DNA of 64,000 nt, taken from Corallochytrium limacisporum Hawaii (lineage: Eukaryota; Protista; Pluriformea). Location of the stretch: assembly GCA_002811645.1 (NCBI GenBank), contig PDIP01000105.1:1-64000 (forward strand), given 5' to 3'. The position numbers were made by a program, and so were the translations under genes. Shown here piece after piece: positions 1 to 14,386 of this stretch. The notes under the pieces are model-generated. The model made no database searches. It was not told the origin of the DNA and was given only the letters and a program-made list of their open reading frames with translations. How positions within the stretch are numbered: position 1 is the stretch's first letter; each line of letters begins with the position of its first letter.

Positions 1-14
1 CCTAACCCTAACCC
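1..14 (-). repeat. Telomeric repeat (TTAGGG)n, chromosome end
   Basis: Window begins CCTAACCCTAACCC, the C-rich strand of the canonical TTAGGG telomere; only about 2.3 units are present. Confidence 0.75.
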
Positions 15-2406
15 TTTTCAAACCCCAATTTCCTATTTACATAAACATAGGACCGGGCCATCGCAAAATCCGCCAGGGATACGCGGAGGGAATATAGCGC
101 AACACGAACAGGGGCTTGGCCGTAAGTTGAGGATTCCTGTGCAGGTTCGCAAATTGATCAATAATTACCCAAGCGGCGCCAAGCATTTTGCTGCGGAGAT
201 TTGCTCGCGAGAACAGGTGAAGGGGGAGGAGGAGGGTCGCTAAAAATAGGCCCCCTTGTAGCAATGGAACTGTCCTCCAAATCCCGACTTCAGGTGACGC
301 GACCCCTGCAAAACCAAGGAGGTCCATTGATGTTTTAATGTCGCGCAAATCGCCGTGATCACAGTAGACATAGCGAATCCATAGGGCAAATCACTCTCAC
401 AATCCCAATAAAGCGATGAACAAGCCGCCACCTGTGTGCTTCCTCTGTCTTGTCTTTCTCCAGGGCCGCTAAATATGCTCGGCTAAGCTGAAAGTTCTTC
501 CAGTTGTTTCTTCCGCATCGTACTCTGGTCTCTGCCGTAGATTCCCATTCCCTCTAGAATCTCACAACCCTTTTTCCACGGTCCATGAATCATAGGCCTT
601 CATAATTTCTATTGCCCATTTCTTGTGTTATCGTTCTCTGGATGCATTATGGTCCCTACCATGCAGGAATGAAAATAGCTCCGTCACGCACGTCTTGAAA
701 AATTCGATGACATCTGAGCGACCAAAAGGTGTTAGGAGTGTTACACGACATGGTCCTCGTGGGTCAACTTTCTCAATACTGTGGTCTCAATACTGTGGGG
801 AGAGGCGGTAGTCACTATGATTTCCATTCCGGCAAGTTCACTTCCTTTGAGATCCAATCATGGCCGCCAACAACATTGTACTTTGGAAGGCCTTCCATCC
901 AGTGTTGGTTGCAAAAAACTTGGGATTGTGGACACGTTGTCGAATTCGCACATCTTGTTACGGAAGGGGAGTGGCATTTCCATCGGATCAGAGCAACAAT
1001 ATGGGCACTCACAACAATGGAGTTAAGCGAGCAGGCGTAGAACCTGTGACCGCAAACCTATTCACCCACTATAAAATTCACCGCATCCTAGAGAAACGGT
1101 TCCCCCCACCCTTTACATGTCGCCGCCCTCTCCTCCTCCCTTCATGAACCACCACGACTTGGTTCCTGCATGTCTACTTCTAACCCCTTGGATTGTCATC
1201 AAGCTGGTTGATACATTTTCACCGGAAGTGGGGTCCAGAACGGCCGTTGAGTCCGTGTTAGTCGGCACCAATTCCTTAGATCGCGCAGGTTCGACCGACA
1301 AAGAGGCGAAGCCAATACTTAGATTCTGAGGTACGGAAGTGTGTCTCCGAGAGGGCGCGGTGGTAACATATAACTGATACTTTATTCGGAGGGCAAGGTT
1401 TGTGATATCCTTTGTGATTGAAGAAGGGAAGGTATTGCGACCTTGTTGAATCTCCCTCGCATATCTTGTTTGCGACAAAGAATGCAGATGGTAATAAGCC
1501 AGGAGAAAGGCGTCGTCAGAGAAGGCCGGCCGCCGGTGGGGGCCTCTGCGGCACAGTTTGGAAGTGGCCTGGCCAGCCGCCAGGGATGAAGGCCTTGGGG
1601 GGGAAGGGGGGGGGGGGGGNNNNNNNNNNNNNNNNNNNNNNNNNNNNNNNNNNNNNNNNNNNNNNNNNNNNNNNNNNNNNNNNNNNNNNNNNNNNNNNNN
1701 NNNNNNNNNNNNNNNNNNNNNNNNNNNNNNNNNNNNNNNNNNNNNNNNNNNNNNNNNNNNNNNNNNNNNNNNNNNNNNNNNNNNNNNNNNNNNNNNNNNN
1801 NNNNNNNNNNNNNNNNNNNNNNNNNNNNNNNNNNNNNNNNNNNNNNNNNNNNNNNNNNNNNNNNNNNNNNNNNNNNNNNNNNNNNNNNNNNNNNNNNNNN
1901 NNNNNNNGGGGGGGAATGAAAAGGGGGCGCGGAAGCGAAGTTGCCATTGGATCAGTGTACAATATCCCCACTGCAGCGTTAAAAGACAGGTTTTAAAAGC
2001 TACGCCAGCTTGCTTGCCTTATCGTAAGACATTTTAAAAAACGGCTGGACAGCCCTGTTTGCGGTCGAAACCATGCCCACCAGGCCCTCATTCACCGGAG
2101 AGCTTGGAGAAAGCATCGGGTATGACTGGATAGCATCAGACACTTCCATCTCTGTCTTGGGAGCACAGACGCCTTTGATTGCTCAATCAGTACGTTATGA
2201 AGCAAGGACATCTAACAAGACGTGAGAAACTACGTCACAAACTTGATGAACGAATCTAAAGTTAGCACAATTCTTTGGAAAGACTCGTGGTCTAAGATCA
2301 CGCAGCTGAGGTACTTAAGTCAGATCGTTTGGAACCGACAGAGCCATGATCTCTCAGCTTTGTGTCAAGTTTTGAAAAAGAATTCAAATCAAATTTCTCG
2401 TCCACA

Positions 2407-2676
2407 ATGAAGTCCTCTATCTTTGTCGTTTGTGCCCTGGCCATTGCTGGTGCAATGGGAGCGCCCTCTGAGCAGGACCAGGTTGCTCAGTTCAAGGATG
2501 CAGCAGCTGAGGTCACCGCCAAGGCCAACGCTGACTACAATGCTGCTTACGTCAGAATCTTCGGAGAACAGCCCCAGGGATGCAGCCCAGTTCCCAACTA
2601 CCCTTGCAGCAAAAACTCCGACTGCTGCTTTGGAAACTGCTACGATGCATACCCGGTAGGCGTTTGCAAGTGGTAG
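2407..2676 (+). CDS. Secreted prepro-peptide with C-terminal inhibitor-cystine-knot (knottin) motif, 89 aa
   Basis: ATG at 2407 (ORF track starts at a non-ATG codon upstream). Signal peptide MKSSIFVVCALAIAGAMG, acidic Ala-rich pro-region, then C-x7-C-x5-CC-x3-C-x8-C (GCSPVPNYPCSKNSDCCFGNCYDAYPVGVCKW). Confidence 0.85.
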   Translation: MKSSIFVVCALAIAGAMGAPSEQDQVAQFKDAAAEVTAKANADYNAAYVRIFGEQPQGCSPVPNYPCSKNSDCCFGNCYDAYPVGVCKW

Positions 2677-3198
2677 ATAGAAACATTCCACCCAAATGGG
2701 AATGAACAGCCTAATGCTTTTCTTATCATTGGACCAATTTCAGGTTATTGGACGAGGCATACGTCGTCATTGTCCAGGAACTCAGTAATGAGTTTGAAGC
2801 AAAATCCATTAAATGCATTAAAGTTTCAAAGCTGTTATGTGATCATGTTGCGGGTCACTGGCGAGAGCACACTACTTTGTGCTCATGGTTTGAACAACCC
2901 AAACTAGAGTAGCCACTGTATGTGGCAGGAGTCTAACATCCTAGATGGCTCAGGTCGTTAACTGGACAGACAAGGGAGTGTTAATTTGAGGTACAACCTG
3001 GTTTGCGAGTAATGGTCCATGTGCGAGTTTCACCGGCAGCGGGTTCAAAATCAAAGCAGTCACGGTCATAACGGCCAGAATATTCTCTGGGTCAAAGGAA
3101 GCACTACCAAAGAAATCCTCATCATCCTCAGAATGGCGCTTGCCTGAAGGCGGACATTCTCGAATCGTAGGAGGGAACTGCTCAGCAAGGAACTCATC

Positions 3199-3717
3199 TC
3201 AGATATCGCCGGATATACTGTCCTTGTCATAGAAGTTTACCTTTATCTTGAGGGCCTCGTCCGCAGTCGAGGTCGCTTTGCCTGAGACGGTGGGAGAGAT
3301 CAGCGAGTCCAGGAAGAGATAGCTCCAGTCTGCACAATTTGGCTGCTTCTTTCATGTCCCTCAGTGCGGCTAAGTCGCCCTCTTGATAAGGTCCGAAACC
3401 TCCCCGGAGGGGATGTCTATAAAACCGCCCTGGATCCAGGTCTTAACGCCATCTCTGTCCTTGTTGTAGACCACGTCACCGGCAATGAACACATCGGCTT
3501 GTGTCTGTGCCGTATAGACGGTAACGTTCACGACGGACAGGGGTGGGATATGGATGGTGGAATCCCACGTCTGGGAAATTGTTGTGCTTGTGGTTCCGGA
3601 GCTTGTTGTCGTATAGGCCGCGGCAAAGGTATTGGATAGACCGGCCTTGATCGTGGAGGTACCCTCAACATCAACAATGCCCCCAAATTTTGTGCTAATG
3701 TTGTTGTGCAGAAAGAT
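3199..3717 (-). pseudogene. Disrupted aerolysin/ETX-MTX2-like beta-pore-forming toxin domain (not in ORF track)
   Basis: Stop-free frame 3717-3373 (115 codons, no ATG) reads ...ISTKFGGIVDVEGTSTIKAGLSNTFAAAYTTTSSGTTSTTISQTWDSTIHIPPLSVVNVTVYTAQTQADVFIAGDVVY..., i.e. amphipathic hairpin, Ser/Thr tract and IPP-x-S-x-V-x-V. Three in-frame stops at 3372-3352, then the frame continues ...SPTVSGKATSTADEALKIKVNFYD to a stop at 3201-3199. Confidence 0.6.
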
Positions 3718-4468
3718 CTAGTTAGAATATAATGATAGTGAGCTTGGATGTACATTACAGTAGGACCAGTGCTGATTACATATCAGTGTCCGACTATGGA
3801 ATGATCCAAAGCAGCAATGGGACGGGTAAATAGGTTTCTACTCTTGAACCCCTATCACACTGAAATCAAGACTTCGCGGTAACCAAGCATTTTCAAAAAT
3901 GTCTGTGTTTGGAGGAATAGTACCCGTTCTAGCTGAAGCCGCCGACCGTATCAGCCTTGGGTGCAACTCTGATAGAACGCCATTCCTCACCTCGGCTTGC
4001 CCCCCCCCCAATCCCCCATCCCCCACCAACGGCGGGAACCGATGCCCACAGTTTTTTTCGCCATCATTCCCTTACCCGGTCTGACCCTTGCCCACTTTGG
4101 TAGATCGCTCGGGCAAGCGTGCGGGCTCGGGAGAAGGCAAGGCGCAGAGGGCGGGGAGGGGAAGCGGACCCGGTGCAGGAGCGAGAGAAGAACTGCCCCA
4201 TGATCGATCCCTCTTTACCTATCACCAAAAATATCCGTTCACAGAGCGTAAAAGAAGTTATGGGATGAACAAGAGAAATTCGTGGGTACCACGGGTGCTG
4301 AGCCTTCTTCGGTCGATTCGTCTCCCCACCCCGAGTCGAAGGGGATTAGTGTGGGGTATTCGCTTTGGCTGTACGTTTTCTGGGGAGGACAGAGGGGCGA
4401 CTCCTAGGGAGCCAGCCGTGTACTAATACAGTAGATTATATTACCTTTTTGGTGAATAAACCGTAACA

Positions 4469-5587
4469 TTACTGCTTTGTGAGCTTTCCCAATACTCTAG
4501 AAAAGTGAACGGGTCTGTTTTTCTGGTAAGGGGGCTTATTGTCGCTGTCGATATTCCAGTACATGAAACCCCGAGGTTGGCAACCGATCGCATGGTTCTT
4601 GTAGTAGTCTACCGCTACTCTAGGCCACACAAACATTGAGCGCCCCTCAATACCATTGGAAAGACCAAAAAGGAGTTTGTTTGCGGGGACATGGACATAG
4701 TGGACCTTACTGGCACGTGATCGGGTGCTGTCCAGAAGTAGCCATCCGTCCTGGTATCGGTTACAGTAATCTTGGAACACTTGCCACACGGGGCGCCCAT
4801 CCTGAAAGTCGTAGAATGCTCGGCCGCCAGGCTCGTATAGCTGGACGTCAATGATGTCCCACAAGTCGAGGTCTTCCCAAATCAAGGCCGCGTACGCATT
4901 GTAAGATTTGAAACTGTCGGTATAGATGGGTTCGAAAGGACTCAAATTGGTTGTTCCGGGTACGATACTGTTGAGTCGGCCATCTTTTCTTGCGATTCTA
5001 GAGAAACTTATCATGAGGTTTACTGTTGCTTGTTTGAGATCCCAGTAATTTCCGCCTTCAAGGTCCCAGTCCACTCCATCAAACCGCATGTCAGGATACC
5101 CAGCTTGAGCAAATCCGTCTTTCTCCCAATCCCTGAAAGCGCGGTACCATTCTTGACCAGAGTAATCAGGATTGGGATGTGGAGCAAGCCATCCACCAAT
5201 ACTGACGAAATGTACCGCGTCCGGATTGATAGCTTTACCTTTGTCAATGGTTTGCGCAATGCAAGCCATGTCCATGGGAAACTGCGGATCAGGGTTGAAT
5301 TCAATTTTAAGATCGTCAGAAAACCATAGGGCAAACCAAATGAAAACGTTTACTCCGTCGTCCATTGCAGCCAAAAGCTTCTCGTCTGGACCACCAGGTG
5401 GGCATTCTTGATTGTACGCTGCCACGATGACATCCGGTAATGTCGCTGCCTTTAGAGCCGGGCTTGCTGGAGAATTGTCGGGAACGTACTTGTCATCATC
5501 AACATTTTCTCCGTTGGTATCCTCACGAACAGAAAGTGCCGTGATGCCCAAAGTTAAGGCAAGTAGGGTAAGCAAGAACCTCATCAT
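4469..5587 (-). CDS. Secreted glycoside hydrolase family 18 (chitinase-like)
   Basis: Signal peptide MMRFLLTLLALTLGITA (alternative start at 5623), SIGG motif (FVSIGGW), intact catalytic DxxDxDxE (FDGVDWDLE), VQLYE and GFMYW motifs. Confidence 0.85.
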   Translation of the reverse strand: MMRFLLTLLALTLGITALSVREDTNGENVDDDKYVPDNSPASPALKAATLPDVIVAAYNQECPPGGPDEKLLAAMDDGVNVFIWFALWFSDDLKIEFNPDPQFPMDMACIAQTIDKGKAINPDAVHFVSIGGWLAPHPNPDYSGQEWYRAFRDWEKDGFAQAGYPDMRFDGVDWDLEGGNYWDLKQATVNLMISFSRIARKDGRLNSIVPGTTNLSPFEPIYTDSFKSYNAYAALIWEDLDLWDIIDVQLYEPGGRAFYDFQDGRPVWQVFQDYCNRYQDGWLLLDSTRSRASKVHYVHVPANKLLFGLSNGIEGRSMFVWPRVAVDYYKNHAIGCQPRGFMYWNIDSDNKPPYQKNRPVHFSRVLGKLTKQ

Positions 5588-7044
5588 TCTTGTAATGTTT
5601 TGCTTGGAAAATCTATCGCTCATCTCCTTAAGATCTCGCTGGTCGCAGTTCTTGACCTCAAAAATACCTGGCCAGTCACCACTGCGGTTTTACCATCCCA
5701 ATTTCTGACACATGATCCAGAACTGCAGGACCATAGCCTTCGCATCATTCGAAATCTACTCTGAATTCGCTGGAGGCCATAACCTAATGTAGTCAGCATC
5801 ATCCCTTCCCCCCCCCTTAAACCCGTACACCTTTAGGTCCCAAGCAGAATTTTGACACAGATGAAGATAAACACGTTGATGATCTCCGGCTGTACACTAA
5901 CCGGTTGGCCGCAGGGGAAATACTATCCCTCCGTATTCAAGATCCGAAGGACAAAAACGACAAAGATTTTTTCTCTCACTAAACAGTCCTCAGCCGATCC
6001 TGTGTTTACCAACGCTGAGATGCGAAGGTAACAGTGGTACTCGCATGCAGTATCACCAGAAACCACCCGCCGGTCAAAAGGCTATTGCGATTTAATCACA
6101 GTATTCGACATTTGTCAAATCACACGAACAATGAAATTTTCGAAACCATTAAATGTAAATAATGTGGCACTTGAACGTTTAGCCAGCCGCGCCAGACGTA
6201 GTAGAATGGCTACTAGTCCTGGGAGCCTCTGCAACCGCGACGAAGACCCTGGTTCCCTTGAGGCCAGCACAAACTGGCCAGGACGACTGCGATCGATCAC
6301 CTTCAGGAGAATATTGGGCGGGCAGGACGAGGTTGTAGAAAAATCTTAGCAATTTTTTCTGGCGGTAAGCATGCGACAGCGGTATAAAAAAAATCAAAAC
6401 AGCGACGCACTCTTCAAATCATACACAAATAATCGCATCAAGATAAGTAGTTCGTACTGATGCCCTGCGCAATGTCCCGATGTTGGCGATGAGGCGGGGG
6501 AGGCTCGTAGGTTTTCCCACAAGTTCCCGGTCACCACGCGTAGGCGGAAGAAACCAAGGTACAGTGCCCATACGCACGTCCGTGCGCACACACACACACA
6601 AACACACACACCCCAAGTCTCGCCTCCATAATTGTTAGATTTCCAGAAAACAATTAGGAAATCCTTGCAATCTGTGTCACAAATTTGTGAGCAGAAAACT
6701 GAGGTTATCGTCCTCTACGACTCAATCAAATGCTCGCCCAAGCGAAGAGAATGCGCAGAAGGATACAGCTCTCCTGAAATTCCTTTTTTCTGCAGGCTCA
6801 GGTGAGAACACTGTAGGCATCAGGGATGTGGGGTAGGGGGTTTAGCTAACAATCACTACGGCTCACAGTCACCAGAAATCAAATTAGAACAAAACAGGAA
6901 ACACTAACAAGGCAGTTGAGTAACTCAATATTTCCTATGGGCTCATATAATTCATACTGTACGAGGGCTTTGGTCAACTCGACAGCCCATTTTATTGCCC
7001 AATAGAGATATTGACCAGGAAGAGATCTGGTCCCGTCGGATGAC

Positions 7045-7572
7045 TTACCCAGCCACAGCCGACCAGGCGATGTCATCAGCATCAATCTCTGGGCATGTGC
7101 CGTGTTGGGCGAAGTATTCAGGAGTGCAAACGGACAATTTGACATGCATGTTGTTCTGCTCACCGTTGTCATCGGTTCCCTGCAAAACAATAGAAATGAC
7201 AGTCGCAGCCTTAAAGTTGCTTTTTGGTGGATCGTAGGCTTTGTCATCGATGAAGTTGGGAATACAAATTTGGTAGTCATCGTCCCAGCGGAAGGTCAGA
7301 GAGAACACGGTTCCGTCATCGTATTGTCCAATCGGGGCAATAGTCATAGTGACTTCGTGGGGGCAGCTGACGTCGTTGGCCACCGTTAACCAGGCATAGT
7401 TATCGTTGGGCAGGTCCATGGGGAATTGTTGGGCGGGGAACAAGGAGGTATCATCCACCATGATGCTCCATCCGTGGTCGATGTAATTGCCGATCATAAC
7501 ATAAGACCCCCATCCGCCCGAGGCCGGAGGGACCTGGGCAATGTAAGGGGTGGTAGTAAACTCGTTAGCCAT
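7045..7572 (-). CDS. Hypothetical acidic 175-aa protein, probably beta-rich, no signal peptide
   Basis: Clean ORF with gtcATG context, upstream GGTATTTAAAG motif and downstream AATAAA (~6990); no recognisable family. Confidence 0.7.
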   Translation of the reverse strand: MANEFTTTPYIAQVPPASGGWGSYVMIGNYIDHGWSIMVDDTSLFPAQQFPMDLPNDNYAWLTVANDVSCPHEVTMTIAPIGQYDDGTVFSLTFRWDDDYQICIPNFIDDKAYDPPKSNFKAATVISIVLQGTDDNGEQNNMHVKLSVCTPEYFAQHGTCPEIDADDIAWSAVAG

Positions 7573-10890: not shown

Positions 10891-11235
10891 ATGAGCTGTA
10901 CTTGTGATTGTTCTGCTCATTATTCGTTTGTGCAGACACTCCATGTGCCCGGTGAAACATGTACTCCAAGCCTCTGTGTTGCGGCTTGGCCTAAGTACTG
11001 CAGTTTGGATTTTGGAGTTCAGGTCGAATATTCTTCCAACGAACTGTCTACCGGTGCAATTGTTGGTATTTCAATGGCCCTAATTGTCTTTGCTGTCCTA
11101 GTTGCTTTCCTGGCATGGTTGGCTACTTTCTATATCACAACCCGAGTTGCAGTGGCACCCAAGGTAACAGATGCTGACCCGGACGCTATGTCCCAGGAGG
11201 AAATGGGTACCTTAATTCCTGCAATGGCCTCCTAG
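10891..11235 (+). CDS. Small single-pass membrane protein with N-terminal six-Cys module, 114 aa
   Basis: CxCxC-x16-C-x4-C-x7-C followed by the LSTGAIVGISMALIV TM helix; paralogous to 11531-12016. Confidence 0.75.
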   Translation: MSCTCDCSAHYSFVQTLHVPGETCTPSLCVAAWPKYCSLDFGVQVEYSSNELSTGAIVGISMALIVFAVLVAFLAWLATFYITTRVAVAPKVTDADPDAMSQEEMGTLIPAMAS

Positions 11236-11530: not shown

Positions 11531-12016
11531 CTAGGCAGTTTCCTTTTGCATAGAATCTTGAACACCGTAAGAGGGTTCGTAGGCAGGAGGAGAGGTTTCT
11601 GTGGACGCAGCGGCAGGATATGCCATAGGATACTGACCGGTTGATGGATCATAGTTCACTGGTGCAGCCGGCTGACCATAAGTTCCTGGTGCGGCCGGCT
11701 GACCATAGTTTACGGGTGCAGCGGCAGGCTGGCCGTACACTGGCACTGCCGTCATGGCGACGACCTTCGGCTCAGGGTCAGCCCTCCTCCGGCGGCAGAG
11801 GCAGCAGCACAAGATGAGCAACATAAGGACAATAATGATAGCAATGACAATTCCCACGATGGCACCAACCGTTAGATCCCCATCTGAGAACTCTGCTGTA
11901 ACTCCGTCTGCCAAATTGCAGTTACCGGGAAAGACGAGGACACAGTTATCCACCGTGCAATCGACATCGACGAGGTTGCCTTCGAAGCCATCGCTGCAGT
12001 AACATGTACAAGTCAT
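11531..12016 (-). CDS. Shisa/WBP1-like architecture single-pass membrane protein, 161 aa
   Basis: CxCxC-x12-C-x4-C-x7-C, TM helix LTVGAIVGIVIAIIIV..., juxtamembrane CCCLC-RRRR, three YGQPAA(A)P repeats and a PPAY motif. Confidence 0.8.
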   Translation of the reverse strand: MTCTCYCSDGFEGNLVDVDCTVDNCVLVFPGNCNLADGVTAEFSDGDLTVGAIVGIVIAIIIVLMLLILCCCLCRRRRADPEPKVVAMTAVPVYGQPAAAPVNYGQPAAPGTYGQPAAPVNYDPSTGQYPMAYPAAASTETSPPAYEPSYGVQDSMQKETA

Positions 12017-13504: not shown

Positions 13505-14386
13505 CTAGGATGATCGGGGGCATTCGATCCCGATTGTAGAAAATCCTTCCTCAGACACGACCACCAGCTGGTTGGTGAAGGACGTTATAGTGGATCCAAC
13601 AATATTCTTGCACTCGTTTTGGTAACTGCCACTCTTGCTTTCGTAGACTTCACCATACAGGGTACGGTCCTCGTCCGTGTACCCGCTGTTGCCAGCATAA
13701 TGAACAGTGGCCCAGGGAGCGCAGCCGCCACAGGAGGAGTCGTGACGAATGGTGCCTAGGATCCACTGGTTTTCATCTGTGACTGTCAACTGGATGTGCT
13801 GAGAGCACATATTTCCATTCCCGCAACCCGAACCTCCGTTGCAAGGGGTGCACTCAATTTGGTCGTAGCCGTCAATCGTGACGGTAGCGGGTGGAATCTT
13901 CCAGTCGCTCTTCAAGTAAACCTTGTCCTCAGGCTGCTCGCTGTTGACAATGTAATACTCCTGAGAATAATCCACAGGTGACGGACCTGACAGACCCTGC
14001 AGGCTAGAGAAAATAGGCACATGGTACGTAACTGTCTGTGTGCCCGCGTCAATTGCTTTACAGTATGGGTCGCTCTGGTAGGGGGAGGTGGTCAACGCAC
14101 CAAAACTATCCTCGACAAGCCCGTCAATTTGAAAGCCCCAGAGGGTCTGCACCACACAAATTTCGTAACTTCCCGACGAGGGCACCTCCACAGTGGCTTG
14201 GGCGGTGAGATAGTCGTATTTGTTCTTTGGGTCGACGTCGTTGTCGAAGACCGCATTGATACCGTTTTCATAGACAAGTTTGGCTCCAGTGATGATCGGA
14301 TTGGTGGTCTCCGTCTCTGATGGGGCGCCATTGGTCAGTACAGAGCCAAGCAATAGAGCAGCAGCGAGAGGTACGAACTTGTTCAT
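13505..14386 (-). CDS. Secreted hypothetical protein, 293 aa (probable beta-sandwich plus Cys-rich region)
   Basis: Signal peptide MNKFVPLAAALLLGSVLTNG, alternating beta-strand patterns, Cys/Gly-rich CTPCNGGSGCGNGNMC and SSCGGC segments. Confidence 0.8.
   Translation of the reverse strand: MNKFVPLAAALLLGSVLTNGAPSETETTNPIITGAKLVYENGINAVFDNDVDPKNKYDYLTAQATVEVPSSGSYEICVVQTLWGFQIDGLVEDSFGALTTSPYQSDPYCKAIDAGTQTVTYHVPIFSSLQGLSGPSPVDYSQEYYIVNSEQPEDKVYLKSDWKIPPATVTIDGYDQIECTPCNGGSGCGNGNMCSQHIQLTVTDENQWILGTIRHDSSCGGCAPWATVHYAGNSGYTDEDRTLYGEVYESKSGSYQNECKNIVGSTITSFTNQLVVVSEEGFSTIGIECPRSS

Follow-up and report, generated by a model that had tools for sequence, protein, structure and literature searches.

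The window analysed here is a stretch of 64,000 nucleotides at the start of a contig of Corallochytrium limacisporum Hawaii, and it carries on its forward strand, at 2407-2676, an intact ORF of 89 codons with its ATG at 2407 and its TAG stop at 2674-2676 (Table 1). The encoded protein is predicted to consist of three parts. Its N-terminus reads as a signal peptide, in which MKSS is followed by a 13-residue hydrophobic core and by small residues at positions -3 and -1 (A-M-G/A-P, the slash marking the predicted cut). This segment is followed by a spacer of 40 residues and by a Cys-rich tail of 31 residues with a net charge of 0, five aromatic residues and four prolines. Two of the elements described in the earlier note on this DNA, namely a signal peptide and a tail of about 32 residues with a C-C-CC-C-C framework, were recovered in this analysis. 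The n-, h- and c-regions together with the -3/-1 motif were recognised by inspection in all nine members of the paralog family described below, of which the signal peptide, as predicted by this rule, is the best-conserved part, and the six cysteines of the tail are invariant in nine of the nine copies.

Table 1. Features at the start of the window and loci of the peptide family; positions are those of the window unless a contig is given
Feature	Position	Strand	Description
Telomere-repeat remnant CCTAACCCTAACCCT, CCCTAA-type	1-15		Contig start
Subtelomeric duplication block, ~1.8 kb	1908-3697		Inverted relative to C76:2947-1146, 84.8% identity (blastn, 1837 columns)
Peptide CDS	2407-2676	+	Complete, single-exon; 89 codons and a TAG stop; ATG preceded by A at -3
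Signal peptide (predicted), residues 1-18	2407-2460	+	Predicted cleavage after A-M-G, from the -3/-1 rule
Acidic spacer, residues 19-58, net charge -3	2461-2580	+	Helix predicted at residues 20-52; putative propeptide
Cys-rich domain, residues 59-89	2581-2673	+	C-x7-C-x5-CC-x3-C-x8-C; predicted knottin-like, with C-terminal beta-hairpin
Relic with three TGA stops and one TAG stop	2984-3711	-	Truncated; C-terminal part of a 519-codon ORF
Chitinase-like ORF, 384 codons	4469-5623	-	N-terminal hydrophobic segment, DGVDWDLE; 1.8 kb from the peptide gene
Peptide paralogs	C6:2407 (window copy), C76:2175, C76:7106, C3:524, C62:2882
Peptide paralogs (continued)	C233:1524, C77:280583, C38:16106, C172:26313

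A chance origin of the ORF can be ruled out, since its Cys pattern occurred once in the six-frame translation of the 64-kb window and in none of 20 shuffles, and since the cysteines are invariant in the nine paralogs. The antisense ORF at 2389-2691 on the reverse strand was likewise rejected as the true gene, because both the Cys invariance and the dN/dS below 1 belong to the forward frame. An identical 89-aa protein is already recorded in a protein collection, which indicates that a gene caller had accepted the window ORF. The locus is very probably a real gene for a secreted, disulfide-rich and knottin-like peptide.

The genome of C. limacisporum, a free-living marine unicellular holozoan, has been published as 24.1 Mb (PMC5560861). 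Six-frame searches of its 24,109,830 bases, first with the protein and later with a profile, identified nine ORFs of 79-91 codons, all single-exon, that share the same layout and in which the homologous Met is the start throughout. Three of these paralogs are recorded in EukProt under EVM gene-model names (Clim_evm2s76, Clim_evm80s77 and Clim_evm1s3), and the published Corallochytrium annotation drew on ab initio as well as transcript evidence (PMC5560861), which does not by itself prove the window gene. Six copies start with MKS and have loops of 7/5/0/3-4/8, and the three remaining ones form a divergent subgroup that starts with MRS, has loops of 6/4/0/4/7-8 and ends in Cys-Gly; the framework common to all nine allows the pairing I-IV, II-V and III-VI. 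Mean pairwise identity in the nine-way alignment was 61% for the signal peptide, 28% for the spacer and 31% for the non-Cys positions of the domain. The domains carry a charge of -2 to +1, two to five aromatic residues and two to five prolines. When a domain-only profile was run against the own genome, exactly the nine copies were retrieved at E <= 4e-10, and the next matches (E 0.41 and 9.6) were without the Cys framework.

The closest duplicate of the window copy, C76:2175, encodes a protein with 82% amino acid identity. Between these two genes 15.2 synonymous differences over 58 sites and 23.8 nonsynonymous differences over 209 sites were counted (Nei-Gojobori), corresponding to an overall dN/dS of 0.38 (Fisher p = 0.011); judged from these substitutions, the reading frame of the window copy is under constraint. 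By region, dN/dS increased from 0.20 (signal peptide) through 0.25 (spacer) to 0.65 (Cys domain), and in two other close pairs it reached up to 1.3 in the domain and 0.20-0.32 in the signal peptide, values from which positive selection is not claimed because the counts are too small. Across the family comparisons the signal peptide showed a dN/dS of 0.03-0.57, and distant paralogs could be aligned as DNA only over 2403-2501, which is the region of the signal peptide. A conserved signal, invariant cysteines and fast-changing loops constitute, as far as can be read from the alignments, the pattern of toxin and host-defence peptide families.

The contig starts with the remnant of a telomere repeat, which places the peptide gene 2.4 kb from a chromosome end. 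Elsewhere in the genome the CCCTAA-type repeat was found at contig ends only, and a control pattern gave 0 matches. Contigs C62 and C233 also start with telomere remnants, with peptide copies located 2.9 kb and 1.5 kb inside, respectively. Six of the nine copies lie at most 7.4 kb from a contig end, and telomere repeats are present at three of the ends concerned. Against a generous background, in which 17.6% of the genome was taken as lying that near a contig end, this clustering has a binomial p of ~0.0015, a value to be read with the qualification that duplicated subtelomeres are not independent. The window copy is comprised in a block that is duplicated in inverted orientation on C76 and that also holds part of a decayed neighbouring gene. 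Separately, a 162-bp element at 2028-2189 is 93% identical to C233:2145-2306, and is thus shared by two subtelomeres; in the window it is located just upstream of the peptide gene, and on C233 it lies downstream of the paralog. In the region 1600-1907, a poly-G run adjoins an assembly gap (1620-1907), and C76 begins with poly-C/poly-G; the assembly of these subtelomeres seems to be interrupted at homopolymer tracts.

None of the curated families that were searched reached its threshold. Among the nine members the best match to Pfam Toxin_12 (PF07740, cut-off 21 bits) had an E-value of 0.16, and a genome-wide scan with Toxin_12 gave no match on any of the nine genes. The window protein scored 7.8 bits with Conotoxin (PF02950) and 11 bits with Conotoxin_I2 (PF17557), for which the gathering thresholds are 25.1 and 27; E-values were 1.5-8.6 for Conotoxin and 0.49 for Conotoxin_I2, all below the cut-offs, and a genome scan with both HMMs gave no match. 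Hevein/CBM18 and CBM14 were not matched at E <= 10 by any of the nine members, and no hevein-type fold was present among the structural matches described below. Membership of the conotoxin, Toxin_12 and hevein families was ruled out on the basis of these scores. The earlier note had associated the peptide with conotoxins, spider toxins and plant or fungal knottins; in terms of family membership this association was not upheld, and the product is better described as resembling a venom peptide without belonging to any of these families. The same note had listed a chitin-binding domain as a possible identity of the Cys module, for which the hevein/CBM18 and CBM14 searches gave no support. As a side observation, the Toxin_12 HMM gave ten sub-threshold matches elsewhere in the genome (15.7-19.8 bits), several of them inside frames of 760-1316 codons and including C99:144621-144683, C238:4044-4145, C34:1266-1328 and C10:70596-70661, which may represent other knottin-like modules on large proteins.

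Word searches, run once with the full protein and once with only its Cys domain, returned proteins of the own genome only, and an exhaustive profile search of 1.84 billion representative proteins returned three Clim proteins and one spurious match. The latter, P0005 (997 aa, MMETSP), was rejected as a relative, since it matches the helical spacer only, in five repeats. A scan of metagenome contigs gave no relative outside the own genome, and an exact-sequence look-up of the encoding contigs found none on record. Because a domain of 30 residues limits the reach of such searches, "lineage-restricted" is used here in the sense that no relative is detectable by sequence. With this definition, the sequence data describe a real, lineage-restricted and telomere-linked family of putatively secreted, knottin-like peptides.

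Structure prediction was in line with this description. In an AlphaFold model of the full-length protein, built with the paralog alignment, residues 20-52 form one helix and the Cys domain has a pLDDT of 84-89, with values <50 for residues 1-18; the domain modelled alone reached a pLDDT of 81.5 and showed a C-terminal hairpin with strands at 22-24 and 30-33 (model numbering). A Foldseek search of the PDB with the domain returned 39 matches, nearly all of them knottins, comprising spider, scorpion, cone-snail and anemone toxins, squash inhibitors and sponge asteropsins; the best TM was 0.66, with an rmsd of 1.8-2.1 Å over 32-34 residues and an insignificant E of ~1. An exhaustive VIA search over 48,161 chains, which is independent of Foldseek, gave 26 with Z >= 2, of which 24 were knottins (best Z 3.2), and the superposition on ICK peptides showed 24-41% identity over 25-33 aligned residues. 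The domain profile matched 14 PDB chains, all of them ICK peptides with their cysteines in register (best E 0.061), and the language-model neighbours were spider and cone-snail toxin precursors with scores of 0.75-0.87, below the level at which they count. The shape search with the full-length model was dominated by the long helix, with pilin-like matches, and was therefore uninformative. The assignment to the inhibitor cystine knot (ICK) made in the earlier note is therefore kept as a prediction: the modelled Cys domain is knottin-like, matches almost only ICK/knottin peptides and has no competing fold, but none of the scores is strong on its own (Z no higher than 3.2, TM no higher than 0.66), and AF2 may be recalling an ICK template from the Cys pattern.

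The spacer had been interpreted in the earlier note as an acidic pro-region of about 40 residues with a possible monobasic cleavage site, YVR/IFG. An acidic spacer of this length is indeed present, and so is the motif, at residues 48-53; however, the motif occurs only in the window copy and its closest duplicate. A dibasic site at the junction of spacer and domain is present in none of the nine copies, no basic residue before Cys I is conserved, and a single internal RK was found in one paralog. As no basic site is conserved in the nine paralogs, the term pro-region is an assumption. The only recurring feature of the junction is a loosely conserved hydrophobic-Gly-Glu motif, situated 3-8 residues ahead of Cys I. 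In two copies the spacer contains an odd Cys, which mildly favours its removal. One kexin/furin-type P-domain was found in the genome (PF01483, 82.6 bits), at C7:128711-128971, and the gene concerned lies ~15 kb from a telomere-bearing contig end. A genome scan for Cu2_monooxygen (PHM) gave no match, as did a control query, and on this outcome the final Gly of the MRS subgroup is not read as an amidation signal. Two small species-labelled runs, neither of them shown to hold this stretch, were compared with 1910-6000: no contig lay on the peptide ORF, and contigs of one run (X2) cover 4689-5547, within the chitinase-like neighbour.

The decayed neighbour of the peptide gene has an intact counterpart in the 519-codon ORF at C76:328-1884, which lies within the continuation of the duplicated block. 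At least 50 loci, most of them close to contig ends, make up the family of this ORF. Pfam ETX_MTX2 is matched by two of them, in one case above the curated cut-off; the member at C76:328-1884 reached an E-value of 0.06. Based on these matches, the relic's family is probably a large expansion of aerolysin-type pore-former-like genes. Members are located 1.8 kb from the peptide gene on C172 and 12 kb from the one on C77, and as many of them lie near chromosome ends, this adjacency is regarded as a shared subtelomeric neighbourhood rather than as a functional pair. The chitinase-like ORF showed a weak match to the solved chitinase 9i2p (E 0.0035) and no Pfam match at E <= 0.01.

We propose that the gene encodes a secreted, knottin-like peptide that acts against other organisms. 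The signal peptide of 18 residues would direct the product into the ER, three disulfides would form by oxidation in the 31-residue domain to give a knottin-like (inhibitor cystine knot) fold, and the product would be released outside the cell. The 40-residue helical spacer would either be cut off by a non-dibasic protease or be retained as an N-terminal helix. The nine paralogs, mostly located at chromosome ends, diversify in such a way that the signal is kept, the cysteines stay invariant and the loops change fast, and the compact, neutral, aromatic- and Pro-rich knot would bind a membrane protein, channel, lipid or enzyme of another organism, which would be a competitor or a grazer. Corallochytrium is osmotrophic and walled, and it is because of this lifestyle, of the evolutionary pattern and of the subtelomeric setting among toxin-like families that use against other organisms is considered most likely. 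For the explanation as a whole, in which we infer secretion, processing, disulfide pairing and antagonism, the chances of being right and of being wrong are about equal. With regard to the antimicrobial activity suggested in the earlier note, the neutral domains make a classical cationic, membrane-disrupting antimicrobial peptide unlikely.

The same peptides could also serve other purposes. As a protease inhibitor, the knot would shield the osmotrophic, walled cell or its secreted enzymes from foreign proteases, or would block the digestive enzymes of a competitor, with its rigid, Pro-rich loop 1 serving for binding. Knottin-type trypsin and elastase inhibitors (SOTI-III, EETI-II, MCTI-A and MCoTI) are among the structural matches, loop 1 is Pro-rich in six copies (S-P-[VI]-[PY]...P), and in two copies of the divergent subgroup it starts with Lys and hydrophobic residues. 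However, the squash framework is without the adjacent CC, a P1 Lys/Arg position is not conserved in the family, loop 1 is strongly variable between copies, and no sequence match to inhibitor families was obtained; inhibition of proteases is regarded as unlikely. The confidently modelled spacer helix and the lack of a conserved site between spacer and knot would also agree with an uncleaved helix-plus-knot protein of ~70 residues with a structural, cell-wall or carbohydrate-(chitin-)binding role, for which the aromatic-rich domain and the nearby chitinase-like gene could be cited as well. Six-Cys hevein-like peptides have the arrangement CC-x5-C-x6-C, from which the loops of this family (CC-x3/4-C-x8-C) differ, the domain searches gave no hevein, CBM18 or CBM14 match, and the structural matches included no hevein-type fold. 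The odd spacer Cys of two copies would moreover be awkward in a segment that is kept, and such a protein is considered very unlikely.

Own-species signals, such as pheromones, mating-type, self-recognition or density cues, were taken into account because small secreted disulfide-rich peptides act as pheromones in other eukaryotes, and because the family is both species-restricted and fast-evolving, as is often the case for recognition molecules. On the other hand, no receptor or mating-locus context was found, the lone Pfam Attractin match (E 0.12, one member) is noise, and nine divergent copies at chromosome ends beside toxin-like families fit an arsenal better, so that a signalling role appears highly improbable. 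A further alternative concerns only the window copy, which might be a silent or decaying subtelomeric duplicate in a family that is functional as a whole. Its CDS identity to the C76 duplicate (~85%) is the same as that of the flanking DNA (84.8%), and the neighbouring gene of this block is a truncated one with four stop codons; because its CDS is no better conserved than the flanks and the neighbour has decayed, the copy could be drifting. That no contig from the two small runs lay on the ORF adds weakly to this, without being proof of silence. The ORF is nevertheless intact, with its six cysteines kept and a dN/dS of 0.38 (p = 0.011), and the identical protein is on record; decay of this copy is regarded as distinctly unlikely. 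Action against other organisms, the explanation preferred here, could also be taken further, to a telomere-linked, fast-diversifying arsenal in which true knottin toxins directed at channels or membranes of competitors or grazers are combined with ETX/MTX2-like pore formers, on a scaffold that is possibly ancestral with that of the animal ICK toxins. This extended version has a slim chance of being correct.

Judged from the models, the family resembles animal venom knottins in its fold and in the layout of its precursor. Its best structural and language-model neighbours are tarantula ICK toxins of the huwentoxin-I type (Pfam Toxin_12), such as JzTx-34 (also named Mu-theraphotoxin-Cg1a), Hm1a and the DkTx lobes. 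They share with this family a signal, an acidic spacer and a ~30-residue C-C-CC-C-C domain with the cysteines in register, as well as the flavour of the motif "...S-x-x-S/D-D-C-C-x-x-x-x-C-x-x-x-x-P...C". In contrast to these toxins, the Corallochytrium family is without the Arg-terminated propeptide motif and belongs to a unicellular organism that has no venom apparatus. The O- and I2-superfamily conotoxins share the framework VI/VII Cys pattern, the prepro layout, the conserved signal and the variable mature region, whereas the matches to their Pfam models (E 0.49-8.6) are far below the gathering scores and the signal and spacer sequences are unrelated. [quoted passage not shown] Asteropsins of the marine sponge Asteropus, found among both the profile and the structural matches, are similarly marine, non-venom, neutral or acidic and Pro-rich, but show no significant sequence similarity (E 0.83-2.7). 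Among the structural matches, plant knottin AMPs and squash inhibitors (Ep-AMP1, EETI-II and SOTI-III) have this class of fold as well. The knottin AMPs of plants are as a rule cationic and squash inhibitors are without an adjacent CC pair, whereas the Corallochytrium domains have the CC pair and a charge of -2 to +1.

Most of what is known of knottins comes from animal venoms, plants and some fungi, and a search of one paper collection found none tying Corallochytrium or other unicellular holozoans to knottins or toxins. The nine genes are a family that is new in sequence but of a known kind in structure, in a lineage without described knottins. If they were part of an arsenal, a single-celled relative of animals would possess chemical weaponry resembling a venom, and if their scaffold shared its ancestry with the ICK toxins of sponges, cnidarians, spiders and cone snails, its origin would predate animals. 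A lineage-specific family of nine genes at chromosome ends, with the conserved signal and variable loops of toxin families, suggests that an osmotrophic protist invests in secreted binding peptides. Together with its pore-former-like neighbours, it opens a testable route to the chemical ecology of the unicellular organisms closest to animals, a field that is almost unexplored. The family also offers new, very small disulfide-rich scaffolds, and Corallochytrium is both culturable and transfectable (bioRxiv 10.1101/2020.11.12.379420).

Finally, some genes located further inside the window are reported here for their own sake. Two convergent ORFs, at 10891-11235 on the forward and at 11531-12016 on the reverse strand, encode small single-pass membrane proteins whose N-termini both read M-x-C-T-C-x-C-S, and the second of these matched Pfam RCR, a family of chitin synthesis regulation, at E 1.4e-4, which does not reach the cut-off. 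Two orphans on the reverse strand gave no Pfam match: one of 293 codons (13505-14386), whose N-terminus is signal-like and whose C-terminal half is rich in Cys, and an acidic one of 175 codons (7045-7572). With these two, the subtelomere looks all the more like an island of lineage-specific, putatively secreted proteins.
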